In this document: positions 399 through 63,059 of the stretch, in pieces | Position numbering within the stretch: the stretch's first letter is position 1 | Layout: every line of letters starts with the position of its first letter | NCBI RefSeq assembly: GCF_902459465.1 | Contig: NC_047064.1 | Location: forward strand, 13,206,001 to 13,270,000 | Source: Asterias rubens | Taxonomy: Eukaryota | DNA: 64,000 nucleotides | Direction: 5' to 3' | Position numbers and translations under genes: made by a program | The notes under the pieces: model-generated | What the model saw: only the letters and a program-made list of their open reading frames with translations | The model's database searches: none | What the model was told of the DNA's origin: nothing

Positions 399-757
399 GA
401 CACTCTAAATTTTGTACACCAAAATATAAAATTTTCAACATCCAAATGAGGGTGAGCCTATACATGTTGCAATGTGCTACATAACGATACATTTTCTTTT
501 GTTTAACCTTTGGTGTACGAATGTGTACGCATATTTGTCAGTTTGTAGTTGATAAAGATGACCTCGGTTGTCAGTTACCACTTGTGCACATGTTAGTTGA
601 AGGACTTTGAAGCAGGGGAGTTGGGTGTCAACAAATTAAAATGATTGGACAAACACCCTGTTGTTGTGCAGCCTCATACATGTATTACAGTTTATGATGG
701 TAACAGACTGGTTTGTAAGGGGTTCAAAATTATCACCATTTTCACATTGCTTGGGAG

Positions 758-998
758 TAGTTTTGTAGCTACACCAATTCTAGTGTGGGCTCTAAATCCA
801 ATTTAGTCCACTAAGAGCAAGCTGACTAACAAAATGATTCATGTTAAGATATTGGGCCATCATTGCTGAAGTACAATCTGGTGGAAATCTGTGCTGGGCA
901 GCACAGTATATTTTGCTCAGATTGCTGGGCGAAATTTGTTTGTTCTGGGCAAGCCGAACCAGCACCGCCCTACAGCGCCCACCGTGGCTACAACACTG
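758..998. mobile_element. hAT-like MITE
   Basis: TIR (c/t)agt(g/t)ttgtagc ... gctacaacactg with exact 8-bp TSD CTTGGGAG at 750-757 and 999-1006. Confidence 0.8.
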
Positions 999-1221
999 CT
1001 TGGGAGTAAAAATGAACACAGGTGGAAATGGTGGATGCACATTTTTAAGGTCCTACTAGTTGCCGTCAACTCGCTTTGTGCCATAAATTTGTCGTCAACT
1101 CCTTGAATATACATTTAAAATTCCCTAAAGAGGCATAGAACTGTAAAGTATTCGCTCAAAGAGAATTTTTTGTAAAATTTAGGTTACATTTAGGTATAAA
1201 AAATTAGTTTTTTTCTTGTGA

Positions 1222-1265
1222 CAAAATTATCTCATAGCAGCAAAATTATCTCATAGCAGCAAAAT
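1222..1265. repeat. 19-bp tandem duplication caaaattatctcatagcag x2.3
   Basis: Exact copies at 1222 and 1241, partial at 1260. Confidence 0.95.
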
Positions 1266-2984
1266 CGACAGCCGCCATCTTGCTTTTTCACAGTGCTTGC
1301 ACAACATCGACAACAGAGGGCGCTTTCCTGCATTTGGAATAGTCTTGGCTCAAGATGTCAATGATCGGTACCGCAAAGTGTATTATGGACTGCGCGTTGT
1401 TTAAATTTATCGCTTGCTTCTTGGGTCAAGACTAATCCATACCTGCCATCTGCGTAGTGGTTGAGTTGACGGCACTAAGCGAGTTGACTTCTTGGGTAAG
1501 TTGACGGCAAGTGGTATGCCCATCCGTTGTCTTTCGTTTGTACTCAACTGGTCTTTTTCAAGTTTTGGCAAATTTTGCATCTAATCTTCATGTCAGTCAG
1601 GGGATGGCAGTCAATTTTTTTTGGGTGGTTGCCATCATTTATTTTTGATAAGTAGTAATTTTTAGTAGTATTTAAAAAAAATTTTTTGTAACATTGACTA
1701 TTTTTCTGGATGGCCGCTAATCCAAAGTTTCTATGGTATAGCAAATTTATCTTTGATTGTGAATCGGTTTTGTCTAGCTGGGTGTTTACCTCTGGTCAGT
1801 AAAACACTAACAACAATTATGTACATTGGAAACCAGGTTCAAAGAAGTCTTGCCTATATATTCAACTTGAAAAACATGAAAGTGGTTGATTTCCATACGT
1901 ACAGTTTGTACAAACAAACCTGGGCTGAATGTCTGTTATAAATGTGGAATTACTTTCCCAACATAATGGCCTTTTACTGTTGATACAGGGTACTTTTACA
2001 TTTTCATTACCACTCTGATTCTGAAAAGACTACACAACAAGACAAAAACAAAATGTGTGGAGACCACACAGCATACTACAGAGACTGATTATAAATATCA
2101 ATAATAATACAATTAGGTTCTTACACTTTTATGTACATTAGGCCTAAAGTCAACAAATCGCAGGTTCTCGATCAAGGCGCTGAGAAGAAAAAATGGAACG
2201 TGAGAGTTATTTTCGAATTGTTAAAGTTATCTAACTCATGAGCATTTTTTTTTTGAAAAGCAGAGCTGAGGTAGAAGAGCAGATGTCAGCTATGTGCCCG
2301 GTTTAATGGCTCTGCTTAATGTAGAATTCTGCGGCCCATTGAATGTGCTTTATTAACGGGTGCCGCAAGTGTACAATGTAGAAGTTGGTGGTAAGCAGTA
2401 GCCATGAAATTTGACCACTGATAACCCCTTATTTGTATGATGAAATGTGTGTGCCCTAAAATATACCAGCAGTAGCCAGTGCTATGTAAGCTTGAAGCTC
2501 CTACGAATGTGCAGTGTACATACACTTACAATAAGTAATGTATCATCTTGTCTTGTCACGATTGTCAATGTCATGTTGAACCTTGTTGCCGCTAGAGGGT
2601 ACTGCATGTACCATGACCACATGTAATGTATTTGTGATTTACCCATTGGGCAGCGGCTTGGTACCAAGACTAATTTTAACACCTTTACGAAATGTGTCAC
2701 ACACACCCCTTAAAGCTGGATGTTCTGTTTTTCAAATCCATGAATAATGTAGACGTTACTTTTAGTTATGTTTCACTCCTAAGAACAGGCTTCCTCAGAC
2801 TGGTGACCATGTCCAACAATGCTCAACAGGGCATACAACTTTCAGAACATTTTAAAGAGCCAATAAAGGATGATCTCAATATGTCAACTATTACCTTTTT
2901 ATGGCCAAATAGACATCGTAGATACCGGTTAATTACCATTTTACTCTCAAAATTTGCATTTAGTAACGAATAACTCTAGTAAAA

Positions 2985-3257
2985 AAAGCACCCGGTCGCG
3001 CGGCCATTTTAGCCGAGGGTCACAAACGGCTTATCTATTATAATGACCTCTTGATGCCAGTGACGATATTCCCCTAATTCTCCTCACAGTATTCCAGCTT
3101 TGGCAAACTAAGGGCGCTATTTTCCACACCAAATAGCCGCCACTGACGTCACGATTCCTTTGTCGCGCAGGTTTGTTTGACCCCGCGTTTTTCAGAAATT
3201 TGGCTTGGAGCGTTCTGTAGAAAAACCATTTTTACCATGTTTTAACTTGAGGTAAGA
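2985..3257 (+). promoter_or_regulatory. CpG-rich promoter-like island ending in a splice donor
   Basis: Locally CpG-rich, full CRE TGACGTCA at 3144-3151, donor ttgag|GTaaga at 3252. Confidence 0.4.
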
Positions 3258-4687
3258 GACTCGTTATACTTTTTTTATGTTTACTATAGACTCTAGCTAT
3301 TAGAAAACTATAATATCTATATATTTTATCAACTATCTAGGAAATTTTGTTATGCCACCTTTTAGGCAAAGTTTTTTCTTTTAGAGCTGTTTACATACAA
3401 TGCATGTCAGACAATCTCAACCATCTCTTATTTGAATCACAGAACTGGTTTAAATTTGCTCTACTTCTCACACAACCTGAACCCAAGGGTTTCCAGCTGG
3501 GTGATAAATGTAATCCACGGAAATTAAGTTTCATAATTTGTCTCATCTTCATTGATTAATACCTCCCCTCCTCATGTCACCAAGGACATCAAATGAAAGA
3601 AGCCCTTTCTATGTTTCTCATGTGGGAAAGCTACTCTAGCGTTCCAAATCCCATCTGACATTTTGTTTACACTCTGCTATTGTCTCTGGGTTTTCTATGA
3701 GTTGTATTCATGTTTTGTGCGGGCACCCTTTATTACTTGACTTATCCATTGATTGGGGTTTGGTGGCTGACTTGATCTATTATGAATCAGTTACAACAGT
3801 ACATGTAGCAACAGTTTCAAGGATTCTCAAATGACAACATTAAGCCAAATGAAAATAAAAACATGTTTAGTGGACCCTTGCCCGCTTACTTTTGAGAGGC
3901 CACTTTCTGTTCATTTTTTCCTTGTTTTTGTTTAAGAAAAAATTATACATTTTAACGATCTCAGACGAAACAAATATATTAAAAAAAAACAAAAAAACAA
4001 TCAGGTTGTCTTTAAAAATGTGTTGAGCGGCCATTTTGATAAAAGGAAAAAAGGCTGTCCTCCTTTAAAAAAAAAAAGGCATGACGCTAAACATGTTTTT
4101 ATATCATTTGGCCATAGGATGTTTTTGTTGGAAAGTATTGTGGAGTTTCCTTCTTGGATGGGGCATGGATGGGGGGGCACTTGGGTCCAGTGGTTTTGAA
4201 TGAGCATGCCAGCGCTTGGTCACAATGTTTATTACTGACGCAAGACTGAAACAATTAGTCCAAGAATGCATGAAAATTAAGATTGTAAACAGGGTGCTGA
4301 ATGGAAAAGTTTCAACAATGACATTCTTGAGGTTGGTGGGGCAAAAATTCCCACAGTTGTTCCTCAATTACTGTTGATTTTGAAGAAGCAGAATTCATGC
4401 ATTCCAAAATGTCCAGTTTCCCATAAAATGCACCAATGATCTGTTGTAAGAGTAGTCGTAAATACTTCAACAATTATTTTGCCATTATCCATAAAATCTT
4501 ACTTTTGAAAGAAGCAATGACAATTTAGTAACTATGTGAGTTCTCTGGTTTCAACCAGAAATCTGTTTTATTTAAACCCCCCAAAAAAATTATAGGCCTT
4601 TTATTAATTTTAAGCAGAAATTTATAATGATGTAAAAAAAAAATTGATAAATATTTTGTTTTAAAATAATAGATGTTAAATTTACAT

Positions 4688-4825
4688 TAATTTGGGTTTA
4701 TACCCATGTGCACCGATGTGTGTTAGCACTGTAACTGTATGTTCAGTACTTTCCAGAGTTCTGTGAAAATAAACATGTAGTCATACATGTATTACTTAGG
4801 TGGGATTCTATTTTTTACTAAGAAT
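4688..4825 (-). mobile_element. tRNA-derived SINE, second family, 3' part
   Basis: Shares gttagcactgta..tcagtacttt...ctgtgaaaa with 34345-34510 and 55650-55752. Confidence 0.7.
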
Positions 4826-4954
4826 AACGAGATAAAACCAATGGCAGAGCAAATTGCAGAATAGGGGTTTCAAAACCAAAGATACATGTTAGCAGGCTTT
4901 GCAAGGCTTCCCGCTTTGCACTCTATACGTTCAACAGCCTATCACACGTATAGG

Positions 4955-5110
4955 ATTTGGTTTGCGGTAACACCATGTACTGTGTATCTACTTGCCAGGT
5001 AGAGTTTGTTCTTAGAGAACTGTCTTGCTTTTAAATTCTACTGCCGCGGAGTAGATAATTGGGGGTTTGGGAGGCTTCTCAGTTCTGAAAAGAACTGTCC
5101 TGTTTTTTAA
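4955..5110. mobile_element. Dispersed repeat with gtttgcggtaacaccatgta end motif (Penelope-like tail family)
   Basis: 20-mer at 4960-4979 is identical to 18166-18185; body matches 33170-33320 in reverse. Confidence 0.6.
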
Positions 5111-6011
5111 CTATTACCAGGGCGGCTGACTATCACATTCGTGATTTTGAGAAAAGATTCCCTTTAAAAAAAACATGGTTTGGACAATTTTCAGGGCTCG
5201 GCTGATAAAGCGCTGTTTGTTAGTGGAAGGTTGCAGTCCTGCCTGCCTGCCCCTTTGTAAATTGTTCTTTATTTAAACCCAACATTTACTTAAAAAGTAG
5301 ACACTGTGCACATAGTACATCTAGGATAAAGAATGAATGAATGAATAGAAGTAAGGAATTTTATGTACTAGTTTCACATTGAGGATGAAGTAAAACATCC
5401 ATCAATCTGAAGCTGACAAAAAATAACAATGAGCGACATTAACACCTGCAACACAATACAAAAGCTTAGTGTGGACCGTTTAGACCCTCTCTTCATTTCT
5501 GTTCGCACGCTTAAATAAAGAGCCATCCATCATAATGCTTCATGAAAAAGTGTTTTCTTTTTATATTTGATTGTTCATGGAATATTCACACTCTATGTAG
5601 AATGCCCTTTGAATCAAGAAATTTGAGTCTAACTGAAGAATGGCATACATTGTAACAATGCGTTAGGCTTTACAGTCCATACAATACTTGTGCACATATA
5701 GGGCTTGATGGATTAGTCACTAGCATTGATGTGAGTTCTCTCGATGAGAAAACTGCTTGGTGATTCAAACTTGGCTCTCAGGTAGCCCAGTGGGCTTGTC
5801 AAACACTAGCAACTGTACCCTCTTAATATATATTTGTTTAAGTTCCAGTGTGCATTTTACTCTATGATCTGATACACTGTATGACTGATGGTAGGCTTCA
5901 ACAAAATCATGGGCTATTCAAATACAGCTGACTAGTCTAGAAGATCAGTCAAAAGAAAAAGGTAGTATTGACTGGCAGTCAGTTTAAAATTCAAACAAAT
6001 AAATAAATTTA

Positions 6012-6206
6012 CAGGTCTGTATGCTTCGGTTTTGAAAGGGCAAGGGCACCAATGCATTTTCTCTGTGGTAATGGGCACCCTAAGACTATGAGTAAATTGT
6101 AAATTTCTGCTGTATACATAGTACGTAGCATTCAAAGGGCACCAATGCAATGACCAGGGGGTATGGAGGTAACTGCCTTCGTTGTCTCCCTAAAGTATCA
6201 AGCCTG
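6012..6206 (+). mobile_element. CAGGCCTG-ended MITE (gggcaccaaggcaatgacc family)
   Basis: Ends caggtctg and caagcctg, flanks aattta and acttta; colinear with 9475, 12170, 14075, 42736 and 50605 copies. Confidence 0.75.
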
Positions 6207-7002
6207 ACTTTAACTTTTAAAATTATTAAGGAATTATCAAGTCAGTTTGCGCTGCGGTTCATTACCTGACTGTACATGTTTACAAAGAGTAAACATTTTA
6301 ACATTTAGCCAAAACAGGGTTCTCCCCAGGTTTTTTTAAAACTGGGTGTATTCTGGAGCCAAACTTTGGAAGTTTTGCATAAACATGTTCTTCAGAATGT
6401 TTTCTACTTTGTGTTTTTCTTGGTTTTTAAAAGCCATATAGTACTGTGCAATATGGAGTATTTATGTTTTCTCTGGATGTGTTTTGTGAAAATAACAGCC
6501 GAATTGTCATCGAGTATCAGCAAAATTTTGCATTTCGAACCCTGTAATAAATCATGGTTTGAAAATGTCAATACTTTTCTCCAAATAAGCTTCTACACAG
6601 AATACATGATGTTGTTTTGTTGTGTATTTTGTACATTGTAATCACTGCATAGTGCACCAATAACAATGTGCCACCATGGAGTATTTAGCCTAGAGACTTG
6701 TTATCAATCAATCAGACCAAATGACTGAAGGGCGCTTAGCATCTATACTACACCTGACCTAATTTTTTGCTAGCGGCTGAAAACATTGCCCATTGTTCAT
6801 GTTGTTCTCCATATGCTGTTGTCTACCCTGGTTTCCTTTCTTTTCCCCCAAGATTTTGACCCAAATCCCATGTCAGGGCCGGCACAGCTTGTCCCCAATG
6901 GTAATTGTGCAGTTTTGTGATTCAGATGTTTTGAAAATTATGAAAAGACATCTGCTCTGATTTTGTTGTTGACGGTTGTATTTGTATTAAGGTAAAAGGT
7001 GT

Positions 7003-7260
7003 GCTTACAATTGGCGGTTTTGCTTTGATCATGTTGATGTGATTCGCTTCACAAGCAAACCCACCGATTGGAGCGATATACAAGCTTGTCTTGAAACTGC
7101 ATTTGTTTCCTTTTTAAATTTTTACATTTCAAGGGTTGTGTGTTTAGGTTGTACTTTCATGTACAATTGGCGGTTTCGCTTTGAAGTGACTCGCTCCACA
7201 AGCAAAAACTACCGATTGGAGCAGATTTATAAGTGTATCTTTTAAACTGCATTGGTGTTT
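7003..7260. repeat. Diverged tandem duplication, about 155-bp unit
   Basis: acaattggcggttt...cacaagcaaa..accgattggagc...aaactgcatt occurs twice. Confidence 0.8.
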
Positions 7261-7795
7261 TTCTAATCAGGACTTGCAATGTACAGGGTTGTGGGTTCAA
7301 ATCCTCCAAGCTAACTGCTGATTTCACAAAGACTAGAATATTTATTAAGCATTGTCTTCTAGTTACTGTTTTAAATCACAATTTCTTGATTTAAGTGCAT
7401 TTTGTTATTATACATGTAGACATTAAACCAGTGTTTGTATTCAAGAAAAATTGGCTGTTGCCAGCGTGATGGTTATATCCCCTTGTGGGAGTTTGCCAAG
7501 TTCCTCTGACGGGAAGATCATTTAACATACAAACAAGTGTTCAAGCACCGCATGGCCACAATGCGCATTACACAAGCACGTCTATAGGGACATTGCCTTC
7601 CAAAATGGTGCAACCAAATTATTGTGACACTGACATCTCAGGGCCCAACCCAATGTCATAGCTCGTGGAATCCTGTACCAATACATGTAAATCTGGCTTA
7701 TAATGTAGATTCATGCGCTTGTCAGGGCTCAGTTACCAGAGAATTCTTCGGTGAGCAGTGAAACCATGGAGGAATAAATTAGAACTAAGCCTTGG

Positions 7796-8235
7796 GGTAA
7801 TTTCATAGAGCTGCTAAAGCAAAATAAAATTGGCTTTAAAGGCAGTGGACACTATTGGCAATTACTCAAAATAATTATTAGCATAAAACCTTACTTGGTA
7901 ACGAGTAATGGGGAGAGGTTGGTAGTATAAAACATTCATTCTCATTAGCGTGGTCAAGTCTAGCAACATGTAATCATTGCAATTGTGGTATCATTTTAAA
8001 GAGGAACAGTTCAGCTTTGCAATGATACCATTATTACAAATAGAGTATTAAATAATAACAAATATACTGGATTGAAAAAAGTTTCCTTACTTTTTGTGAG
8101 CAGTTTATTAATAGCTGTTGTTCACTTAGTATTAAGAATTGAGTGGAGTCTTGGCCGATAATCTGATTTTACTAAGCAAGGATTTGTTTGCTTGAAAGCA
8201 AAATTTTGTGCTTAAGCAGCTCCATGTTGGGTCAA
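7796..8235. mobile_element. PIF/Harbinger-like MITE interrupted by a Kolobok-type fragment
   Basis: aatttcatagagctgct left end and gcttaagcagctc right end; nested TTAA|aggcagtggacac fragment at 7840-7936. Confidence 0.6.
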
Positions 8236-9186
8236 ACCATGTGTGTACAGTTATGCCTTAGTTATTTTTCTAAAACTTGTTCAAGCTCATTAAAAGATCA
8301 GTTCAAGGTACTTACTACCACAACCATGGAGCAAGGACAACAGTGTACTGGGGGGGGGGGGGGGGTGATCTGGTTGGCTTAGGAAAGAGGACAACAATTA
8401 CAAATTTCTAACCTTGATTTTAAAATGGTGTAAATTGTCACTGTGTTTGATACTTCAAGTGCAATTTTTGTCTATGGTTCATTATACATTTTTGTAGAGA
8501 ATTTTCAGTTTAATCCTGAATTCTGCTGAATGTTTTATAGTCAATGTTGGAATGTTCAGAATCAGTGGTTTTGCTGTCAGATGTAGTCATGATTCAAATT
8601 TCACTTGGAAGAAAAGTATAAAATCAAATTATTGTTCACCATTTCAACATGAGGTAGAGACCTGATAACTCCCCCCCCCCCCCCCACTTTCATGAGGATT
8701 CTATTGAAAAGTTCGCGTATTACAAAACGCAAACCGATCTTGGAGCCCCTCTTTAAACTTTTTTTGATTCGATGCCCATTTATTCTAGTAAAGCCAACGG
8801 TTGATTGTATTCATCATAATGGATTTAATTTTTGTTCATGTGTGCAATGTTTACATTTGTTGTTAAAGTAACAAATCCTTCTGAATAGTAACCCCGGTCA
8901 AAATTCAAGAGCAAATAGAGAGGGTTGCCGGGCAGCGTATAATTGTAGATAGCACTTGAGACACCTGGAGTGTTAGACAAAGACATTCCTGCCTATGAAG
9001 CATTGGATCATCAAATCCCTATGATCAAACATGCTTCAGATAAAATAAATAATAAATCAGGGATCAGTCGGACAAGCTTGAATCAGGAGGAGGGATTTGG
9101 GGTCTGGAACCCTCTTGGAAAAAAAACACAGGGCGAGGGTTAGCTACTGTTGCATAGGTTTCAGGCATAATATTCTTCCTACTTAA

Positions 9187-9301
9187 AGCTCGGTTCATAC
9201 TTCCTGCATACGTCACTGCCCTGTTTTCGCTGCAAAATGTTTCACAGGAGGTGAGCACAGTTCGCATCATATTCGCATTTGCAGGAAATATGAACCAGGC
9301 T
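9187..9301. mobile_element. Short PIF/Harbinger-like MITE
   Basis: TIR agc(t/c)(c/t)ggttcata(c/t)ttcctgc, flanked by taa and tta. Confidence 0.7.
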
Positions 9302-9474
9302 TTAGTCTGTTTGCCAATTTCTATTGCCCAGAAACAGCATTTAGCTTTCACCAAATAAGTTCAGTCTGAATTTCTTGCTATAATGCAAAATTGCTGGACG
9401 AAATCGTTCCCTGAAGCTCAACATTTAAATCTGTTGTTCATTTGGTGTCTTTGTAACAAATTGTAACAAACATG

Positions 9475-9650
9475 TCGGCCTGTGTGCTACGTTTTTGAAA
9501 GGGCATGGGCACCAAGGAGGGTTTCTCCTTGGTAGAGGGCACCCTATGGGAAAATTGTAAATTTCTACTGGGCATTTCAAGGGCACCAAGGCAATGACCT
9601 TGTGGCACGGAGGCAATCGCTTTCGTTGCCTCTGTGAAGTATTGGGCCTG
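9475..9650 (+). mobile_element. CAGGCCTG-ended MITE copy
   Basis: gggcaccaagg...ggaaaattgtaaatttctact...gggcaccaaggcaatgacc...gggcctg. Confidence 0.8.
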
Positions 9651-9839
9651 GATTGTACCCAACACACATGATTGTGGCTGTGCACATTTCTGTCAAGTGT
9701 AAATTTTTTATCCATTATTTTGTGTCCATCCAGATTTTCTGTGACTGTGTCCGGAGCACCAGGCATCATGTGAGATTGGAACCAGTTTGTCATGTTTCAC
9801 CCAACCTTACATTGGACTGGGAGAGATGTCACAGAGTCT

Positions 9840-9948
9840 ACTGACATGGTACTTATTCTTTAAGATGTTGTAGTGTTTAGGCTATTTGTAGATTCCACTG
9901 ACATGGTACTTAAACTGTAAGATGTTGTAGTGTTTAGGCTATTTGTAG
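9840..9948. repeat. About 57-bp tandem duplication
   Basis: actgacatggtactta..taagatgttgtagtgtttaggctatttgtag occurs twice. Confidence 0.9.
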
Positions 9949-10091
9949 TCCAGAAGGTCACTTGCTTTTAGAAGGCCACATTCTGTACTAAAGAAACATA
10001 AATTAATGGAGCCCTGGAATTTGACTCAAGGTAAGGCTGCAAGAGATTGTGTATAAAATGGATTTTGTGTAAAAGGCTGTCAGTACAGCAG

Positions 10092-10263
10092 CCGATTTCA
10101 CAAATGCTAGGATTAATTCTATCTCAAGTTAGGACAAGTAACTCGCCCTAACTTACATTGTAGGATGGGTTCAATGCGTCTTTATGGCTATAGATATGGA
10201 ACTGAACTTGTCCTGAGTCCTAAGATTAATCCTAAGTTCGAAAGAGTTTTGTGAAATCGACGG
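10092..10263. mobile_element. Harbinger-like foldback MITE
   Basis: ccgatttcacaaa ... tttgtgaaatcgacgg with CAG flanks; inner inverted repeat aggattaat/attaatcct. Confidence 0.65.
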
Positions 10264-10570
10264 CAGAGAGTTGAAATTTCGCTTGATTTGAATTCACCAT
10301 ATTTTTGACCGCATGAGAGTGCTCAAAATAATTTTTGTATCATTTTAAGCTAATTGTTTAAAACAGTTTCATCAGCGGCTTTCTGTCACTTTAGTGCACC
10401 GTAGTTTTAGGTTGATTTGAGGTGGGTTATAACGGCTCCCTTTGTTTAAAAAATCTTATTGTCTGTGATGGATATGATGTCTCCGGTTGTATCAGTAGGA
10501 ATGAATATATATCTCCGGAAGTACTAATAATATTTTGAAAGCGCTCTCACACGAACAAAAAATATTGGCA

Positions 10571-10650
10571 TTTGGTTTGATTTGATTGGAATTGAATTGA
10601 TTTGGTTTGATTTAAATTGATTTGATTCAATTTGATTTTATTTGAATTGG
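10571..10650. repeat. Degenerate (TTTGA)n pentanucleotide microsatellite
   Basis: About 16 imperfect units seen directly. Confidence 0.9.
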
Positions 10651-12169
10651 CTGAAATTTGCGCGGATTGCCTGCAATTCGGGCGGTTTTTTTTTTGTGCC
10701 TGATTTGCCAGCTTATGCATGGGGAGAACCCTAGACATATAAAAAAATAAACAGGGCTACATGTGTTTAGAAAAAGTTAACATCCAACACATTATTTACA
10801 TTATGGATAAAAACAAGAAGGCAGTATAAAGTTGCCAAAGCTAAAGTTTGCACAAAGTTATAATGCAAATTATGACTCCCTTGACCCTTTTGGCTTTTGA
10901 GTTATTAGTATCTGGTAGGCCTACAGGCGACTTACATGTACATGGTGTCACTGCAAACCTTAACGTACTTGATACACTTTATTATGTAATGAAATTATCT
11001 TCATCGGTAAACCATGAATACTGCACTAGATGTGTGACTAATCCCGTAATGTGTAAATTAGCCACTAGATCGTTTTCTCATTCAAAGATTCCAAAACCGT
11101 GTCCCCTAGAGGCTGGTTAACCCTCTGTGGGGCTGTCGGGGGTTTTTTCGAAAAAAAGGAAGCAGAAGAAAAAAAAACTCCCGCCCCGGTCAGTTGATAT
11201 TATACCCTTTGCTTTTTTGATGTTTCTCCGCGATCCAATTTGGCAATTTCAAAAGCCTGGTGATATCCCATTCATAGCTTAAAAGTGCAGCGGGGCATGT
11301 GTTAATACCTGAGTCATAGATCAGCAAACATTGACTGTGGACGGATTAAGGTTGATTTTTTAACAGTTAAAGTGGTCGCTTGGGGGTGGGGGGTTGGGTT
11401 GGAGGGAGGGGAGGGTTAATGGAAAGTAGATGGTACACGTAGATCGTGCAAAAGCACAAGGTCGGTAAGCTATAAAGGGTCGCCAATCTGCTCATGAATT
11501 TGTGATTTGATAATTGTTGAAAATTTTAAACCTTACTGCATTTAAGTATAATATGAACCTTAGGTTTTTGGAAATGTTTGATTCTTTTAACCCAATAGAA
11601 ATGTAGATTATAGGGACTATAAAAAAGCTAATCTGTGGAAATTTCTATACTAAAGGTGGTCGCGTTTTTGAGATATCGCCGAAAAATCTGGAGCTGGAAC
11701 AATCATAAGAATAATCTGTTATTGGCAAACACAATCTGATTAACGTACAGTTATAGTACTCAGCTTAAATGTTTGGGGATAAAACTTACAGTTTTTATAA
11801 CCACATTACCTTGAATTGAGGTGATTCTCAAAAGCTGACTTCTACCCAAGTTAGTTTTTGTCATCAATTGTAAAATGAGTAACGAATACCTTCACTTAAA
11901 GCACTTCAACAGTCCCTATACATATTGTAGGGCCTACATATGTGTAGTACGGTATTTTATCTCATTATTTATTAGTTTAACTTTCCACTAAAATACAATG
12001 TTTAGCGTTTTCTGAGACTAGCAGGGTTCTCATACACAAACAGCAAAGAAACTGTCTCTCAGTTAATCACTTGGTCATAAAAGCATGGAAGGAGAAAATG
12101 GGGAAGACAGAAGCTCAGCTACTATACAGACATAGTTGCCAGGGATATGGGACAAGCTTCCAAATGATC

Positions 12170-13150: not shown

Positions 13151-13155
13151 ACCTC

Positions 13156-28610: not shown

Positions 28611-28619
28611 ACAAGTTAA

Positions 28620-52138: not shown

Positions 52139-52498
52139 AGACACTGGACACTATTGGTAATTGTCAAAGACCAGTCTTCTCGTTTAGTGTATCTCAACAT
52201 ACATGTATGCACAATATAACAAACATGCGAAAATTTTAGCCCAATTGGTCGTCGAAAGTTGCGAAGTTGAATCAAGACCTCAAAATTTCAAAATCTAATT
52301 CTGAGGTCTTGAAACCAAATTCGTGGAAAATAATTTCTTTCTTGAAAACTATGTGACTTTAGAGGAAGCCATTTCTCACAATGTTTTATACCATCATTAG
52401 CTCCCCATTACTCGTTACTATGTAAGTTTTTATGCTAATTAAAGTAAGTTTTTATGCTAATAATTATTTTGAGTAATTACCAATAGTATGCGTTGCCT
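52139..52498 (+). mobile_element. Kolobok-like TTAA MITE (family A)
   Basis: agacactggacactattggtaattgtcaaagacc ... ttgcct|ctaa; internal 18-bp duplication gtaagtttttatgctaat. Confidence 0.85.
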
Positions 52499-53619
52499 CT
52501 AAGGAAAGGATATATGTTTGGTAATCACCCTAAAAACTAACGGCAATATAAACTTTGGGTGAGAAGCCTATGGCATTTGTGGAGAGCACAAGGCATTATT
52601 TTTATTAGCTGATTTTACATGTAGCTGAGTGGTACATTCTCAATCGTTCATAATGATATGATCTACAACATCAACATACTGTACGCAGTGATGTCCAATT
52701 TATATCCATGCATTCTCTGGAGTGTGTATGATATTGTTCCAACTTTATTCTGATTTCTGAATTATTTTTGTTTGCCCTTTGGAAAACTCAGAAGAAATTG
52801 TGACTAAAAGCTACCGTATTAACATCTTCAAAACTACCTTCGGTTAAGCAAGTTACTTTTCAGAGCTGCGCTTCTGGATAAATTTTCACACCGCAAATCA
52901 CACCGCATAGCAGCCCTACCTACATCTTGTGGCTAGAGAAGAAATCTTCATATATGCATCTTTGAATGGGGTCACCAGAATAATATTTCACTCCTCACAA
53001 CACATTGTGTATATCTACACTCGCATTCAGTATTGGCGTCTAGGATTACTAGCCTGGCAGCCAGTCTGCCATCCCGCAGAAGTACGTTATGATCTACAGT
53101 TCCTCGATCGTCAGTTCCATCCGGTTTTCTCTGTGTCCCAACCGATGTATCCAAAGCTCTCCCTTAGCGAGATTAGGTATGAATTATTCATAGCCATTTT
53201 TATGTAGGGCAGTAGGTTTGTTGTATTTGGTGACATAAACTACGCGCTCAACAGCTTCAAGATGTTTTAATTGGAGTGGTCGGTTTAAAGCTTTTAATTA
53301 CATGACGGTTTGATGTTTTTTGTTGTGTCGTCGATATTGGTGGCTGATGGAAATGTTAATTAATGAGGGTTTAGTGCATGTTGGCGTTAGCTTGCTTTGG
53401 GTAATTTGACGCCATGGAGTATTGTGTGTAAAATTGTTCCGCACTGCACATAATACAGTGATGTACATGTACGTAGATGAATTGGACACATAAGGTAGGG
53501 CGTAGTGGTCATGCTGCTCGACATGCTTGAGGAAACTGAGTCTGTTTACTAAAGTCGTGTTTGAGCCAATATGTCTCATCAGGCCTGTGTTTATATCCGG
53601 TTTCCTTGACATTAAACGA

Positions 53620-54065
53620 CTGAGAATATGTTGTAGCCTCCTGGAGGAATGCCAGTCCATTGCATGTTACTATCCCAGGTTTCCCCGATACCCATTTGTA
53701 CTCCTGGGTGGAGAGAAGTGATTGTAATAAAGTGCCTTGCTCATGGAGACAAGTGACTGACCAGCACCCAATTTCACAGAGCTGCTAAGCACAAAAACTT
53801 GCTCAGAACTTGCATGAAATTTCTTCCTTGATAAAAACAGGATTACAAACCAAATTTCCATTTGCTGCATGCTTGTTTGGTATTCAGCTGTTGCTTGAAA
53901 TCCTGAAAATCACGTGGAAATTTGGTTGGTAATCCAGTTTTTATCGAGGAAGAAATGTCATGCTAAGCAAATTTTTGTTGCTTAGCAGCTCTGTGAAATT
54001 GGGCCCAGGCCGCATTTTGTAAATTATAGAACTTGAGTCTACCATCATAGACCACTCGGCCACAA
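53620..54065 (-). mobile_element. CORE/Meta-like SINE split by a Harbinger-like MITE (53765-54005)
   Basis: SINE halves flank cag|cacccaatttcacagagctgct...agcagctctgtgaaattgggcc|cag. Confidence 0.75.
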
Positions 54066-54591
54066 CACCCATATATAGTGGGGACCTGATAACAAAAGTG
54101 GTCAATAATAACAACACTACTGTATGTGGACCTACAAATGTAAGGACATAATTACCGCTCTAGATTTTCGGTGATACTGTATCTCAAAAACGCTACTGAA
54201 ATAAAATATTCACATGGTTAGTTTTATTGTATATAGGATTAAAACAGTGGCATGGTTTCAAAAACCAAAGGTTTACGTTCCCTTTAAGCCCATCCAACTG
54301 AAATCTTGTCTTTTTCTGTGGGTGCTGTCTTTTCTCATAACATCATTCTATTCAACTGGGACTGCAGCTGTGGTTGCTAACCATCCTCCATGTAGAAGAT
54401 AAATAATTCAGGAAGCGTAGTGTACTTTGGATTCAGAATACTAATATGGCCAATAGCAGTTCTTGGAAGCGCTATATCCTCCAGTGTGCTTGACAAATTG
54501 AAGTTGTTTTCCATTGATGCATCATGACGGTTGAGTCATCTGTGAACCCAATATGCCATTTGTATCTCAATGGTTTCCCATCAACCTTTAA

Positions 54592-54990
54592 GGGTTTTGG
54601 ATACCTTTTGTAGATCAAGTTTTTGGCCATGACATGAATCCCTACTTTTCACTGTGAAATAATATGTATATGTACACTGTACATGTAGTTTAATTTACCT
54701 GTGGAAGTTTCAGCTTAGAACATTAGTTGTCAAGTTTTTGAGAGAGAAAAAAGTGCAAATCACAGAGGAGTGTTTTCAGGAGAGTCACGTAAATCCGTCC
54801 TACACGCTTAACAAGGTTTTGTCGCATTGAAATGGCAAATATTTATGTTTGTACTCATTTCTCCACAACAAAAATACAGCACCTCAGCAAGTAATATGTT
54901 AATGACAGCTGTCTACCATCATTATCTTTCAACATTTGAAAGTTTAATGTAAATCTGTGGACATTTGTGTTTTGTGTAAAAAAGTACCCT
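54592..54990. mobile_element. Kolobok-like TTAA MITE (family B)
   Basis: TTAA|gggttttggatacc ... aaaaagtaccct|TTAA. Confidence 0.7.
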
Positions 54991-54994
54991 TTAA

Positions 54995-55339
54995 AGGATT
55001 TGGGTACTTTTTGTAACACAAAACACTACAACTTGCACCGATTGAAGATAATGACAGTAAAAAGTGTACCTCAAAATATTAGTTGCTGAGGTGATGTAGT
55101 TTTTGAGAAATGAGTAAAACAATGTCATGAAAATATGTTTTTACATGCTAAAGTAATTTTTGTCTCATGAAAATTATTTTCATGACATTGTTTTACTTAT
55201 TTCTCAAAAACTACAGCACCTCAGCAAGTTATATTTTCAGGGAAGCTTTCTACTACTATTATCTTCAAATTGTGTTAGTTTAGTGTAAATCTTTAGATAT
55301 TATGGTGGTTTTTTGTCCTACAAAAAGTACATAGACCCT
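54995..55339. mobile_element. Palindromic Kolobok-like TTAA MITE (family B)
   Basis: TTAA-flanked; 53-bp internal arms at 55083-55135 and 55175-55227 with 2 mismatches. Confidence 0.85.
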
Positions 55340-55649
55340 TTAATCAAGAAATTGTCTTTTATTGGTAACGCTTGATGATGTTCAAGTTTTCATTTATTTA
55401 CAAATATGATAACCCACATAATGTTTTCGTGGAAATAGTTTCCCCAGAGGCAGTGACATCCATCTTACTAAAACCCTGACTCACCCCCCCCCCCCCCCAA
55501 CCTCCTTCCATTTGCTCCCCCCCCCCCCCCCACGCATAAGTATCATACACAGCCTTCCCATACTTGCCTCATGCCTGAAGATCCAAAGCTGTACTGATTT
55601 AAACGGAAACTACTATGGTAGATCATTGATCAAGGACTGTGGTTTGTCA

Positions 55650-55752
55650 TTTTGGTTTACACTAACTTAGATTTGTGTTACATGTAGCACTATATACTCA
55701 GTACTTTTCTAGGGTTCTGTGAACAAAAAATCGCAGGCATATTATTCATGGG
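55650..55752 (-). mobile_element. tRNA-derived SINE, second family, fragment
   Basis: gcactatatactcagtacttt...ctgtgaacaaaaaatcgcaggcatatta. Confidence 0.65.
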
Positions 55753-55936
55753 TTTATTTAGTAAAGATATTGATTGTATAAAAATATTCTCAGACAGTGT
55801 CCATGTTTTGTGTGATCAATGAGGTACATGAAGTAACAAACCTATGAAAATTTTGGCTTATTCCGTTGTGTGAGTCAGGAAAGCATTTAGTGAAAAACCA
55901 TGCATGATGATTAGCATGTAATTCTGTTGTCCTTAA

Positions 55937-56332
55937 AGACTCTGGACACTGTTGGTAATTGACAAAGACTAGTCTTCTCACTTGGTGTATCTCAACATAT
56001 GCATAAAATAACAAACCTGTGAAAATTTGAGCTCAATCAGTCCTCAAAGATGCAAGATATTAATGAAAGAAAAAAAACCCTTGTCGTACCATGGTCACAC
56101 GAAGTTGTGTGCTTTCAAATGCTTGATTTCAAGACCTCAAATTCTTAATCTGAGGTCTCAAAATTAAATTCATGGAAAACTACTTCTTTCTCGAAAACTA
56201 GTAACTACGTCACTTCAGAGGGAGCTGTTTCTCACAATGTTTTATAATATCAACCTCTCCACATTACTCGTAATCAAGAAAGGTTTTAAGTTAATATTTG
56301 TTTTGCGTAATTACCAAACGTGTTTAGTCCCT
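55937..56332 (+). mobile_element. Kolobok-like TTAA MITE (family A)
   Basis: TTAA|agactctggacactg ... gtgtttagtccct|TTAA. Confidence 0.88.
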
Positions 56333-56594
56333 TTAAGTTTGCAGCAGCTGCTGCATTTTGAAAAAAATGATACATGTGAGAAACTACAGATTAATTAAAA
56401 TGTCCATCACAACGTGTGTGGATTATTTTTCATCATATCAACCCTTAGCCAATTCTCATCTGTTTTATAAATCAAGAGAGACTGATTATTTGGTGATATT
56501 AAAGTTTATTTTGAGACTGTCAGTTGTTTCATGTCATACTGACGGGGGACCTCCATTTTTTTAATTAGAATCACCAGTCTACCGATGGCACGCT

Positions 56595-57060
56595 ATGGAT
56601 GTCAAACTCAAATTAAAGAAAACCGCAATCACCGATTACAGGACATGTAATCAGTAATCAGCAAAGTGCCATAACAGGCTCTATTGCTTACTACTCTTAC
56701 ATTCTAATTTCCTCTTACATATTTGTGTACATGTTCTGGTGAAGCTGCAATGCAGTGTGTACAGTTTTAATCTCAAAGCTATAGTTATTGTTTTTCTCTC
56801 TTTTTGGATGACACACTATGGATGTAAAATTCAAAAGAATGAAACCGCTATCACCCCTTAGACAGTAATCAGTAAACCAAGTGATCAGTTAACATGGTTA
56901 AGTGCCATAACAGGCTCCAATTGCTGCCTATTCTAACATTCTAATATGGCAGATTATTTGTGTACTTGTAAACCATGTTTTGGTGAAGCTGCATTGAAGA
57001 GTGCAGTTTTAATCCCGAAGCCAATTGTTATTTTTCTCTCCCCTTTTGGAACTGATATGG
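56595..57060. repeat. Diverged tandem duplication, about 230-bp unit
   Basis: aagtgccataacaggctc...acattctaat...tatttgtgtac...tggtgaagctgca...cagttttaatc...tttttctctc occurs twice. Confidence 0.85.
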
Positions 57061-57459
57061 TGAGTCAGATGAATTGATATTTCTTACTTGGCCTTGTCTT
57101 GTTGTGAATTGTTTTCCCACTGTCAGCAACAGATCAACCTTAAAGGGGATGGATCATCTTGGGGTACTCAGAGATTTGACTTAATTTCAACATTCATAAC
57201 GTATGTTTGTGCCGTTAAAGAAAACGTCTCATTTTTTGTTTGCACATTGCAAGTTTGTCACATAAGAGGCGGAAAACCACTCGTGGTAAGGGTCTACAGC
57301 AAGAAAATATTTTAAGATGAAAGTAACTCAGGAGAGCCGAAGAAAGAAGTTGATACTCCTAAAACAGTCTAGATTGTAGGATGGAGGGAAACATGCAACA
57401 GGCAAGGTGTTCCAAAGATATGCTGTACATGGAATAAAGCCAAAACAAAATTTATTTTT

Positions 57460-57616
57460 GTGACATTGTCTATAACTCATTTCTCAAAAACTACAGCATC
57501 CCAGCAAGTAATGTTTTAAGGGAAGCTTTCTACTATCATTATCTTCAAACTGTTTTAAGTTTAATGTAAATCTGTGGACATTGTGTTTTGTGTCTTACAA
57601 AAAGTACCCATACCCT
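57460..57616. mobile_element. Family B MITE right arm
   Basis: tttctcaaaaactacagca...aaaaagtacccataccct|TTAA. Confidence 0.75.
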
Positions 57617-58719
57617 TTAATGTCTCTTGCTTGCCCAGCGGATTGTTTCCAGCGTTAGGGATGGCTTTTCTTGATTGGTATCTCTCACCTTGAATCATAA
57701 CAAGACACTTTGCTGATGAGAAACGAGCCAGGCTCGACTGGGAATATTGGCCTCCGTCATTAAACTGCGTGGGGCTTTGGAAGATCATTCATGCAGTGTT
57801 TTATGGCTGCTAGAATTTTGAATAACGCAGATACCCTGTCTTTTGTTGGCTTAAATGTTTGTAATTATTTGTGTCTATGCCTTGGTTTTCATTGGTTTAG
57901 CTACCTTTTGAGACTCGGTGCAAAAGGAGTTCTAATAAACATTCTAATACATGACACATTTTTTCTTGATCTCATATTTGGTACTGAAGTAATTCTAGTC
58001 TAGGTTTACCCTAACTTATATGAGGTTAACAGTTATTAAAACTTTTCAGTAAGGTAATTACAGACAAAGTAATCCTAAAAGTACATGTACATCACAAACG
58101 TAACGTGAGTAACCGTTGAATTGCCCCAATAGTATCGCAAGACTGTGAGAGTTTCTGTAGATTTGTACATCAATGACAATCAAAATGAAAGTGTCCAGGC
58201 GGCTCCACTGTACAATGGGCGTTCTCTCCGGCCAACCATAGTGGGACACCAGATTGACTGTTCCATATACATGTACCTCAATGAAATTAACTCAGCGGTC
58301 ACCTCAGACGAAATTTATTAGATCTGTCCGCTTAAGCGTATCTGCTGATCCCCGAGATTGTCAGTTTGTTCAGAGATTTTCTCTCACAGTGACCAAAAAG
58401 CCTTCTGGCAAAATAGGAAGCGACAACTAATGCTGGACTCAATCTGCGACAAAATTAGCATACTCTTGCAAGAACACTGATGGAGGATTTGGGTTTATGC
58501 TCCTATGGTTTGTACAAAATATAGTAGTTAAAGTGGATCTCAGACATTTATTGATTTTTGTATCAAATGCAACCTTAAGTGTAGAATACCATTAGAAAGC
58601 ACCACATGTTATACCAGCTGTAGAATTGTTCGTATTTTGTTGAAGTTATTGTTTTGTGGAGACAACAAATACTGGCAATTCCCCTTGTTTCTTTGTGTGG
58701 GTTACTCGGCGTGTTACTT

Positions 58720-58990
58720 CACAGAGGCAATGGCAACCGTTGCCTCTGTTGCCCCTGGTCATTGCCTCGGTGCCCCTCAAGGATTCCTCACGGAGGTGCC
58801 CTTTTAGCAAAGAGAAAAACGCCTTGGTGCCCTTGCCCTTTACACAAATGAAGCATCAGTCCTGTTGCTTACTGCATTGCAAAATACAAATAATATGCAG
58901 GCCCGATACTTCATGGAGACAACAGAGGCAATAATTGCCTCCATGCCCCTTGCCATTGCTTTGCTGCCCTCTGAGTGAAATGTTCAAATA
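58720..58990 (-). mobile_element. Two adjacent CAGGCCTG-family fragments
   Basis: ggtcattgcctcggtgcccc...gccttggtgcccttgccc...cagtcctg, then caggcccgatacttc. Confidence 0.7.
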
Positions 58991-59874
58991 GAAACGTTAG
59001 TCTTCTTCAATCATGTAGAGTTTCCCTTTATCACAGGGGAAAAAAACACTGTGTCCTTACAAAAAAACAAAGTACATGGGGGCATGTGCAAGGACATTAT
59101 ACTGCAATACATCATGGAGCAAGATTTTGAAGTATCGTTTTACATGATGTACCTGTACTGAGTAGACAGCAATCATAGTATTATTGGAGCAGCTATGATT
59201 TCACCCACGCCCCATTAAGTCTTGAGTTTCAGGCTCTTTGCCATTTCTTGAATATTTCATCCTGGGATGGTACTGGACAATATAAGCATTCTTGGATGCA
59301 AATTGCTTTTATGAAACAGATTTATTGGCTCCCCTCAAGTTGTCAGTTGATACATGTAGGTGATAGGAAATCTTCTCCTACAGCCCTGGGCATGCTGGAC
59401 ACGGGATGGCAGGTTAAAAGCACCCATTGGACTTGGTGGAATATCCTAGGACTGTATTTTTAAATTGTTACGTTGCCCATTTGCTCGGTTAGTTTACCTT
59501 AAAAAAATCAAATGGGCACAGGGTTTAAGACAAATAAATTCGGCTGTTCTTAAATCTAGAGTTTATGCATTTGATAGTACTCTTTTTATTTTTTAGGGTT
59601 CCTGAGTGCATACCTACATAAAACCTTTTTACAGGGAGAAGTTTTTGATTTTGTTCATAAAGTGATGTGTAAGCCAGAGATAATCATCATTGATTAATCT
59701 GTTTGGTATTTGGCATGAGATACGTACATATACATTGTATGTACACTGCATGCGCAGTTTGTCTGGTGGCTATCACAAACTAAATAAACATATGAGGAAT
59801 TTGATATCTGCTGATATTAGAATTAGAATCCAACTCCAAATATGGCCAATTTCAGACCTTGATTTTCTTTCTTG

Positions 59875-60019
59875 AACAGGCACAGCAATTTTTCTCTGGT
59901 GAGAGGCACTTCTATGAGGATAATGTTACTTTGTATTGAAACTTTGCACAGGGCACCACAGCAAAAACACCAGGCATCATTTTAATTAATGTGGGTGTCG
60001 CAGGTTATTTTGAGGCCTG
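59875..60019 (+). mobile_element. CAGGCCTG-family MITE, degraded
   Basis: gggcaccacagcaaa core; ends gaggcctg. Confidence 0.5.
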
Positions 60020-61372
60020 TAAATTTTATATGTGGATGCATCTTTTCATGGAATCCACAATGTTTTGTCAGGTGCTTGCTACAAACTCTTTTCCTACTGT
60101 ACATGTAGGTATGTAGCCAGCCTCTGTATTTTCTACAGATGTTTTATGGTAAATGAGGCACAGTGTGTTCAGATTGGGTCCTCCTGTCAGAATGTTTCAC
60201 CATGGAACCAGGCTCTTTGTGTGTTCTCACACATACACTCTTGCTTTTCTGAGATGTAGTTTTAAAAAAAACCCAGTGAAACAGCTTTATTCTATATTCT
60301 GCATTTCTTTGGAACCCTTTGCCTGGTGCATGTTTTCCTCCATCCTACAATCTAGACTGTTTAAGAGGAATGTCAATTCCGTAACCTTCAGCTCCCCTGA
60401 GTTATTATCTTCTTAAATATTTGTAGCCCCTTACCAAGAGTGGCTTTTAGACTTGTTTGGGAAGCAAACTTGCATAAAATATTTCTAACAAAGAGTACAA
60501 AATGTACAGGTGTACAAAAATATATAAATGAGTGAGTTGATGAATTTTTGTGTGTATCCTCTGCCATGATGCAGAAAGAGCCGCCTTGAAATCTTGACAT
60601 GTCATGAATGCAGCACATGCCATTCCATTTAGTCAATTGCATCTCAGATTTGGTTGCGCTCTGCTTGTTTATGAAGGACGTATACGAATGGAATCGTCCC
60701 CCAGCATTCCTACTCGCGCCTCAATGCTTCATACACAGGTGGTGCGGTTGTTTCCAAATTGCCATTTCACATGAATGCTCTCCGAACCCAGACAAGAAAA
60801 AATACAAATTTTGACTGGTTAACAATCAATAAATAGCAAGGTTTGACAAATGTTCAGCGACGAGCCAGCAGGACCAAGTAGCTTGTCATTTCACTTGTCC
60901 ATCAACTTCTTCACTGGTCCATACTTGACAATCTATACTGAATAGGGATGCTTTTTCAACACTGAATTGGCCAGCAGGACAACTTGGAGTGAATATTGAC
61001 CGGTCCTGAGGTGTTTTAACAGGCAGTTGGCCAGCAAACAGACGAACGCTGAATAGGGTTTTCTGGTAATTGTTTTACCAACTATATCCAGGAAAGGTTT
61101 TACATGTATTTAATTCAATAAAACATTTAATTTGGTTTTGCCCTCACATGATAAAATACATTATTGGACGTGTTTCATAATATAAACAGTAGCCAACATT
61201 ATTGATAAGTCAGAACATAATATTACCGTTGTCTATAACGACAAACTGTTCTGCACAGTTCAGGAAGAGGGAGAGACAAAGGTTTTTGCCTAGAGCCAAC
61301 TGATCGCAACCTTTCCTGATAGAAGAGAGGAAAAAATCCTGTCACCCAAAATGTCTGTTAGTGACGTCTTAA

Positions 61373-61614
61373 AGGCACTGGGCACGTTTGGTAAATGTCA
61401 AGGACCAGTATTTTCACTTGGTATATCCCAACATAATACAAATAACAAATCTGTGAGAATTACGACTTGAGCAACTGGTTATAGAATTTGAAAGAGGGTA
61501 ATAAAAGAAAAATCACAATACTTTTTACTATCAACAGCTCTTGATTGCTCATTGCCAAGTACGTTTTTTATGCTTACAACTATTTTCAGTAATTATCAAT
61601 AGTGTCCAGTGCCT
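61373..61614 (+). mobile_element. Kolobok-like TTAA MITE, internally deleted
   Basis: TTAA|aggcactgggcacg ... gtgtccagtgcct|TTAA. Confidence 0.85.
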
Positions 61615-63059
61615 TTAAGATGTTCATCAAAACTTATTCTGACTCCTTCGTCCTGGCTGAGAAAAAAAAATCATTTTGAAGAAGCCGCAGGAAAGCCAAC
61701 TGTGACCTTTCCGATATGTGCCTCTTGACAGGGAAGGAGAATTAGGGAATGAAAACTAACGGATGTGAATCAACTGATTAAAGATCAAACCAATGTTGTG
61801 GGATGGAGGGGTGGGGAAATGGAACATCTTATTTCTTCCCCAGGGTATTGTGTGCTGATAAAGTTTCATTACTGGCTGATTTTTGGAACGATTTGTGTCA
61901 TGATTTATGTCAAATTTGACAAATGTGTGACTTACAGTGATACTTTTTTTTACATCAATTTCCTTGGTGTCGATTTAAAGATGAACATTCAAAACGTTTT
62001 CAGAATCCCCTGACAGTATTGAAAATGTCAAGATGTCACATGATCCTATGGTAGGTCTTATGGATGTGTATAGCAGAAAATACCATACATGTAGAAACCT
62101 GCAGCTAACTTTGTATTGCAGTCACTTTGTGGACATTTCTTTGTTCTACTTCCAACACAGGTGCAAACCCTGTGTCCGTAGTGTTTAAAAAGCCTGCCTC
62201 ATGAGAACCAATTTGTGCATAAGCCTAGCGGCTCTATATGCTATTTTGTGTCCGGGGGGGGGGGGGGGGGGGGGGGGAAGAATCCTAAGTGTAGCCTTTA
62301 TTCTCAAAGTACCATTTGAAAAATGAAAACAACCTTGCTCATTCACAAATAATATTCTCCAGGGTGTATGGAATTAAACACTTTAAAAAGAAAAACAACG
62401 TCCATTTGGCCGTATAATCCTAGATGTCACTTTTTCCCCCTGAACCTCTTCCTGCTTAGAATGCAATACGACTACTTTGGACGTCTGAGCTTTGAGCCAT
62501 AGATCTCACGACTTTATTAAATTTGACCGCAATGAGGCCGCAGAGAGTTGGTTCTTGCTTTAACTATAGCTGCCCCCCCCCCCCATCATTTCATAGATGT
62601 CTAATGGGATTGTGTGATGGTCCAGTACACTTCAGCTTATGAAGGTGTTGGGATTGGTTTCTGTAGCGGAATGTGGCTGGGTGTGAGTCATATTTGACTT
62701 GAGGAGGTGGTAGTGTGTGGTGGGGTGGAGGGGGGGGGGATGTTGGACTACTGAGGGGGGGATGTTTCAATGTTGTTGTGAGTTAAGGAATAGTGATAAC
62801 AAGTAAATTCATTCCGCGGTAGTGAAGTTAATTTTGAGAATTCCCCCAAGCCACTAAAGTGAAAGTAGTCCATGCTAGTAAAGCAGGACAGTTTTAGCTA
62901 TAGTATATCAAATTCTGTAGAATAAACAGCAAGATATAAGTTCTCAAATGGAATATTGTTTAAGTACAAATTCAAATTTGTTTTTGTATCGTTCTAATGA
63001 TGCAAATTTAATGACCTATATAAACCACAAGGGAAACTTACTTAACATTTATTTATATC

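Follow-up and report, generated by a model that had tools for sequence, protein, structure and literature searches.

An invariant six-base insertion at TA sites in a 64-kb stretch of the Asterias rubens genome, probably the excision scar of a cut-and-paste transposon

Introduction

A stretch of 64,000 bases from the sea star Asterias rubens (contig NC_047064.1, positions 13,206,001 to 13,270,000; hereafter the window, which is gap-free and has a G+C content of 38.65%) contains the eight-base word TACATGTA, that is, CATG enclosed by two TA dinucleotides, far more often than its composition would predict. The question raised by this locus is how one fixed short sequence came to be written at so many separate TA sites, and by which process. 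A first-pass annotation made by eye had counted roughly 50 copies against about 2 expected by chance at a GC content near 37%, had described them as six-base insertions at pre-existing TA dinucleotides, and had proposed that they were probable excision footprints of a Tc1/mariner element. Here, the count, the specificity, the age, and the distribution of the motif were analyzed, and the processes that could have produced it were weighed against each other. The explanation that we favor, with a probability of roughly 0.6, is that the copies of TACATGTA (for brevity, scars) were left by the excision of a TA-targeting cut-and-paste element with ends of the form CA(TG)...(CA)TG.

Results

Excess of the motif in the window

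The motif was found in 56 copies spanning the whole window. In dinucleotide-preserving shuffles (n = 100), 1.9 copies were expected and the maximum was 6, while an order-2 Markov model predicted 3.4 copies and an order-3 model, for which the inserts had been removed first, predicted 3.0, corresponding to a 16- to 30-fold enrichment. The order-5 expectation of 26 copies was set aside because the copies of TACATGTA themselves inflate this figure. The excess reported by the first-pass annotation was thus upheld, and its estimate of the GC content was corrected. After tandem units were collapsed, 53 independent events were obtained, amounting to approximately 0.83 per kb and to 1.19% of the 4452 TA sites in the window, and no significant clustering of these events along the window was detected. 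The complete set and the compound copies are as follows:

677..62093, unstranded: all copies of TACATGTA, 56 occurrences, 53 independent events
36708..36727, unstranded: triple unit, (TACATG)x3 then TA
45512..45525, unstranded: double unit, (TACATG)x2 then TA
26246..26287, unstranded: two copies of TACATGTA produced by a 34-bp tandem duplication carrying the scar, the flanks of 26246 and 26280 repeating each other

The triple unit at 36708 fits either repeated visits to a TA within an older scar or slippage, and only this unit and the double unit at 45512 could have been lengthened by slippage.

Insertion of six bases at a pre-existing TA

A comparison of the window with itself revealed six sites at which sibling repeat copies have plain TA and a clean 6-bp gap in place of the motif. 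Since the siblings carry a single TA at these sites, TACATGTA results from the insertion of six bases at a TA that was already there, as had been claimed. Some of the sites lie in copies of a miniature inverted-repeat transposable element, or MITE, which is described below together with the other host repeats. The six verified sites and one decayed scar are as follows:

4784..4791, unstranded: verified +6 at TA; the sibling near 34425-34460 has ...GGCA-TA-TTACT... and leaves a clean 6-bp gap
28715..28722, unstranded: verified +6 in a TTAA-flanked MITE copy; one sibling in the window is without the six bases
30420..30427, unstranded: verified +6 at TA in a MITE copy; clean 6-bp gap at a TA or near-TA dinucleotide in seven siblings
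33262..33269, unstranded: verified +6 at TA; its reverse-strand sibling at 4975-5015 has ...CTC-TA-CCTGGCAAGT...
52200..52207, unstranded: verified +6 at TA in a MITE copy; the siblings at 55985 and 32022 read CTCAACA-TA-TGCA
55679..55686, unstranded: verified +6 at TA; the siblings at 34370-34410 and 4708-4745 read ...TGT-TA-GCACTGTA...
39707..39714, unstranded: decayed scar TACATGAA, a private +6 in one MITE copy, one substitution off the motif

At 28715, the consensus of the other genomic MITE copies, represented by 111-472 contigs in each of four runs, is also without the six bases, and no repeat family was found whose consensus already contains TACATGTA, the case that the first-pass annotation had named as refuting its proposal. 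Among the paired examples given in the first-pass annotation, those at 4784, 30420, 33262, 52200, and 55679 were borne out, as was 28715 on the strength of its one sibling plus the genomic consensus, while the sibling comparison at 25745 was ambiguous. Separately, single contigs of single-copy depth from three runs were seen at 28718 to cross the 28715 scar minus one base, giving TACTGTA or an equivalent form; this shorter form may represent an allele or a further copy of the MITE.

In an alignment of 10 MITE copies, four private insertions were TACATGTA events (28715, 30420, 52200, and 39707) and the remainder were tandem duplications, which means that the event made up 4/4 of the private nonduplicative insertions. 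The flanks of TACATGTA are unrelated from site to site, and the motif is therefore not internal to one repeat family. The same six bases were nevertheless present in all 53 events, in agreement with the earlier statement that the insert is identical whatever the flank and not templated by a hairpin; footprints of the hairpin type (hAT, Transib, RAG), in which the added bases vary with the flank, do not have this property. Slippage or tandem duplication would yield an insert that copies its surroundings, whereas none of the six verified inserts repeats the bases next to it.

Presence of the scars in independent data and in other organisms

A 1558-bp marine metagenome contig of the same species (L001), the only one returned when the protein collection was probed with a scar-spanning open reading frame (ORF) of the window, was 99.6% identical to the window and carried the motif at its position 499, corresponding to 29760. 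Contigs of four runs were also compared with the window, among them those of three other organisms (B, C, and D), which are approximately 2-4% diverged from it according to shared words. High-copy MITEs dominated the output of this comparison and most indels were left unlisted, so that five sites could be judged. All five were scarred in other organisms too; one of them, 25125, is probably also crossed gap-free by contigs of other organisms, and the other four are as follows:

25745..25752, unstranded: scar also in organism B (X3 contig, 25601-25805, zero differences, zero gaps)
27494..27501, unstranded: scar also in organisms B and C (crossed gap-free by contigs of X3 and X6)
29760..29767, unstranded: scar also in organism C and in L001 (X6 contig crosses it gap-free)
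30715..30722, unstranded: scar also in organism D, about 3-5% diverged (X7 contig, 30579-30745, one difference, no gaps)

Since an independent metagenome contig and the contigs of other runs carry the same scars, an assembly artefact was ruled out, and since the five shared scars are present in other organisms, they predate the splits between these organisms. A second metagenome provided six contigs of a related echinoderm, which have only repeats in common with the window (80-86% identity) and which contain four copies of the motif in approximately 11 kb. Apart from the scars, the window is 23 bases shorter at 26030-26128 than the contigs of B, C, and D alike, indicating either a 23-bp deletion in the window lineage or an insertion common to the others.

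These data left a negligible probability for a group of explanations comprising chance, the slippage of microsatellites, a motif that belongs to a repeat family, and an assembly artefact. The few tandem units (36708 and 45512) and the pair arising from the 34-bp duplication (26246/26280) are of the kind that such processes generate. However, 0 of the 100 shuffles gave more than 6 copies, the insert at the verified sites was not copied from its neighbors, the flanks are diverse, and the same sites recur in the independent contig and the other runs.

Sequence specificity and variant forms

Among the 16 palindromes of the form TA-xy-y'x'-TA, TACATGTA was the sole strongly enriched one (56 observed vs. 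3.4 expected), followed by TAGGCCTA with 4 copies against 0.4 expected. The latter was located at 2139, 10916, 12790, and 43204, with CA or AA next in all four cases and without paralog evidence for an insertion. Likewise, only the TA version was enriched among the 16 forms XY-CATG-XY (again 56 vs. 3.4). The partial and related forms were counted as follows:

TACATG then not-T: observed 26, expected 22.9
not-A then CATGTA: observed 22, expected 24.7
TACATGT then not-A: observed 15, expected 9.8
TACATA: observed 33, expected 28.6
TATGTA: observed 30, expected 25.9
TACAGTA: observed 8, expected 6.6
TACTGTA: observed 6, expected 6.9

Half-scars in which either outer TA is missing were at background, and the detectable outcome is therefore almost always a complete scar. 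The TA is duplicated and both of its copies are kept at the site, as in Tc1/mariner footprints.

One other form was clearly in excess. TACAWTGTA, comprising TACAATGTA and its reverse complement TACATTGTA, corresponds to TACATGTA expanded by a single A/T at its center and was approximately 9-fold enriched, with 15 sites against 1.7 expected. It may be a second scar type; paralogs were found for one site only and were ambiguous as to an insertion.

2372..59739, unstranded: TACAWTGTA, 15 sites, e.g., 5646, 13646, 36423, 39350

Flank preference and age of the scars

When the outward flanks of the 106 half-sites were pooled, A was depleted at position +1 (0.13 vs. 0.33 at ordinary TA sites) and T was enriched at position +3 (0.51 vs. 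0.30), each deviation amounting to approximately 4.5 standard errors. The flank in which the TA is followed by CAT was 3.5-fold enriched. The target-site preference around the TA is thus symmetric (palindromic), as is characteristic of Tc1/mariner elements, and the strict two-sided TA specificity together with this preference fits a TA-targeting DDE transposase.

One-mismatch variants of TACATGTA numbered 75 against 53 expected, corresponding to a decay of roughly 5% per site, while the host MITE copies are 10-20% diverged from their consensus. On this basis, the average scar clearly postdates the host repeats, although not all scars are recent, which bears out the earlier proposal that the insertions occurred after the host repeats had themselves inserted.

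The same numbers bear on the idea that a function of TACATGTA, as a binding site or as a palindromic structure, accounts for its retention or spread, its excess being the result of selection or conversion rather than of the rate at which it originates. TACATGTA is a perfect palindrome, and a modest excess of one-mismatch variants would also be possible under purifying selection. However, the sites lie in decaying copies of MITEs and short interspersed nuclear elements (SINEs) as well as in unique noncoding DNA, with no positional pattern or clustering, and retention would leave the entry of six fixed bases at a TA unexplained. This account was consequently considered highly improbable.

Search for the source element

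The statement of the first-pass annotation that no full element is visible was confirmed, as no element in which CA... ends adjoin a TA and none with matching inverted repeats was found within the 64 kb, giving a balance of 53 scars to 0 resident copies. The CATG between the two TAs is compatible with ends of the CA...TG type, and no element with such ends was found in the window. In a Pfam search, neither a significant match nor a transposase family was obtained for the eight window ORFs of at least 110 amino acids. An inverted-repeat element of 224 bp (54875-55098), which has TA-CAGCACC... ends, was rejected as the source, as its similarity extends beyond the TA on both sides and it lies within nested inverted repeats.

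Several results weigh against an excision origin. Within the window, no TA-flanked pairs of terminal inverted repeats with CA-type ends were found, the clustering of sequences adjoining half-sites yielded no family with a CA-type terminus, and no such terminus was found among families of repeats in which the similarity sets in at a TA. A terminus shared by four sites, TA followed by CATGGTGTTACCGCAAAC (4960, 10941, 18166, and 18263), was tried as a source end and rejected, as a metagenome scan identified it as the start of a 68-bp satellite unit. Neither a +4 excess of the C. elegans Tc1 type (TACATA/TATGTA) nor a +5 excess of the Sleeping Beauty type (TACAGTA/TACTGTA) was present in the window. 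In addition, at the five judgeable sites neither a filled nor an empty state was observed among orthologous alleles, most indels being unlisted in that comparison, and the excision itself is thus something that we infer. The duration of activity that would be required and the pattern known from rice, both discussed below, belong to the same side of the balance.

The same gap leaves room for processes that involve no ordinary resident transposon. In one of these, a TA-specific break, due to a nuclease or a fragile step, would be repaired with the addition of a fixed CATG and the duplication of the TA. Such a process would need no source element in the window, and it would suit both an outcome that is more uniform than the usual repair of natural excisions (PMC4423477) and the existence of a second enriched form, TACAWTGTA, with one central base different. 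By contrast, a duplicated TA with a symmetric flank preference is the signature of staggered DDE-type integration, and the end bases CA...TG are typical of Tc1/pogo-type elements. Moreover, no repair pathway is known to us by which a fixed tetranucleotide would be added irrespective of the flank, and we regard this origin as distinctly unlikely.

Alternatively, a domesticated transposase under host control could remove TA-bounded inserts, through programmed elimination or germline clean-up, so that the assembly would contain the junctions only. The presence of 53 scars with no resident element in the window agrees with this proposal, as does the invariant junction, which would follow if an enzyme defined the cut and the overhangs were self-complementary. 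However, contigs of several runs and organisms cross the sites and show no filled forms, albeit that contigs drop rare variants, and the decay and tandem doubling of the scars fit ordinary inherited DNA. To our knowledge, the programmed elimination of small internal sequences is not known in echinoderms, and host control was rated as very unlikely. Considered jointly, the absence of an ordinary resident transposon, with either host-controlled excision leaving only junctions or TA break and repair writing CATG, is still unlikely. If either were true, approximately 10^5 identical enzyme-defined junctions would exist, if the density in the window is extended to a genome that is assumed to comprise several hundred Mb.

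Host repeats and other features of the window

The main host repeat, which the first-pass annotation had taken for a SINE, proved to be a MITE that is flanked by TTAA and approximately 390 bp long, with ends TTAAAGGCACTGGACAC..., of which at least 10 copies are present in the window:

22735-23115: MITE copy
24339-24721: MITE copy
28617-28980: MITE copy
31967-32349: MITE copy
39661-40006: MITE copy
52150-52503: MITE copy
55936-56337: MITE copy
15795-16181: MITE copy
30334-30598: MITE copy
45743-46038: MITE copy

Since its summed contig depths were in the millions in all four runs, this MITE is extremely abundant across these sea stars, and its terminus had no match in the prokaryote and viral collections. 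The 68-bp tandem-repeat family, whose unit starts with CATGGTGTTACCGCAAAC and ends with ...CTCATGTA, forms arrays in the metagenome contigs of the related echinoderm (L002:35-258, L004, L005, L007, and L008) and is represented in the window by single or partial units (18263-18330 and 4940-4977). A 141-bp hairpin at 18153-18293 consists of two 61-nt arms with 100% complementarity and a 19-nt loop; each arm contains the start of the 68-bp satellite unit, and no obvious target-site duplication was seen.

Two compositional features were also recorded. The word TACACTGTA occurs in 7 copies (5873, 14065, 14263, 14281, 20659, 45094, and 54673) and its reverse complement TACAGTGTA in 0, with approximately 0.75 expected for each, an imbalance that constitutes a strand asymmetry. 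Homopolymer runs are frequent throughout the window, with 43 G8 windows and 69 C8 windows against 2-4 expected under an order-3 model.

Discussion

The claim of probable Tc1/mariner excision footprints was supported as far as the duplicated TA and the flank preference are concerned, but not with regard to an element with matching ends, as none was found in the window. From the observed insertions we infer a transposon, its end bases, the geometry of its cuts, and its copy-number dynamics. The element would duplicate the TA upon insertion and carry CA(T)(G) at its left end, with the complementary bases at the right. Cleavage of the non-transferred strand by the transposase would then occur a short distance within the element and would leave each flank with its TA plus a 3' overhang of a few element end bases, and the joining of the flanks would give TA-CATG-TA.

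Three geometries could lead to this product. With a 2-nt stagger and CA...TG ends, the overhangs would be unable to pair and fill-in would be needed. With a 3-nt stagger and CAT...ATG ends, the overhangs could pair via AT/TA, with one base filled in per strand. With a 4-nt stagger and CATG...CATG ends, the overhangs would be self-complementary and could be ligated directly. Because partial or trimmed scars are nearly absent, the 3-nt or 4-nt geometry is probably to be favored, the uniform scar suggesting microhomologous or self-complementary overhangs.

Since the scars outnumber the residents 53 to 0, the family is probably a low-copy, often excising, and long-acting +6 mutator. These numbers could be reconciled if nearly every insertion were later excised, in which case scars would accrue along one lineage at approximately the rate of insertion. 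Under assumed rates, if tens to hundreds of copies were maintained and insertion took place in approximately one gamete in fifty, some tens of millions of generations could be enough for several hundred thousand scars to build up. Such a total would require activity of unusual duration. Because of this requirement and the missing source element, our confidence in excision was held at the value of 0.6 given above.

If the motifs are indeed excision scars, hit-and-run transposition has been recorded densely and legibly in this genome, with approximately 1% of the TA sites visited and almost no elements left behind. One transposon family would then be the main source of nonduplicative small insertions in this lineage, and exons that were hit would gain two in-frame codons. 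Each scar would be an essentially irreversible and datable character for sea-star phylogeny and population history. A low-copy cut-and-paste family could thus heavily mark a genome while being invisible to copy-number surveys, and the uniformity of the scar predicts element ends and a cut geometry that can be tested directly. Should no such element exist, the pattern would need a new mechanism.

Fixed excisions have been documented by comparison of genomes in rice. Between Asian and African rice, 8 of 94 fixed DNA-transposon excisions were clean, while the others involved deletions and/or filler sequence, and insertions exceeded excisions (PMC4423477). The sea-star scars resemble these events in that the excisions would be inherited, fixed, and recognizable by comparison; by contrast, they are uniform and outnumber the resident elements, which is the reverse of the pattern in rice.

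Within the Tc1/mariner elements, 3' overhangs and end joining produce scars consisting of the first or last 2-4 nt between the TAs (PMC6943129). In C. elegans, 78% of the somatic Tc1 excisions leave TATGTA or TACATA, corresponding to +4 (PMC12632400). The first-pass annotation had invoked Tc1 as the precedent, and the two systems do agree in the TA target and would also have CA...TG ends in common; however, the usual Tc1 scar keeps the end bases of one side and is at background here, whereas the sea-star scar would keep those of both sides. Sleeping Beauty likewise leaves two TAs around the terminal bases of the element as a result of 3' overhangs and end joining (PMC6943129), but its scar (TACAGTA/TACTGTA) is a +5 with a central A/T choice, and neither version is enriched in the window. 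Its canonical targets are palindromic, as are those preferred here, and its noncanonical targets echo the transposon end (PMC5801840). The enrichment of CAT next to the TA in the sea-star flanks parallels the latter behavior, and an element end beginning with CAT would fit.

A closer precedent for a +6 event is Minos, a member of the Tc1 family that leaves a characteristic 6-bp excision scar in Drosophila (PMC3386967). Minos targets TA, and its scar at the donor site matches the sea-star scar in length. The Minos scars were recovered at individual experimental loci, alongside flanking deletions, while the sea-star scar is one fixed sequence found approximately once per 1.2 kb of inherited DNA.

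In Paramecium, internal eliminated sequences are bounded by TA, are related to Tc1/mariner ends, and occupy very many sites throughout the genome. Their excision is a programmed and precise event of the somatic nucleus, after which one TA remains. The spread of very many TA-bounded excision sites across the genome is the feature that this system would share with the sea star, although nothing in the present data shows programmed elimination. In the literature that could be searched, we found no report of one invariant scar occurring approximately once per kb in an animal genome, dominating the small insertions, and far outnumbering its presumed source. Excision scars as such are already known, and what appears to be new in the sea star is their density, their uniformity, and their excess over the presumed source.

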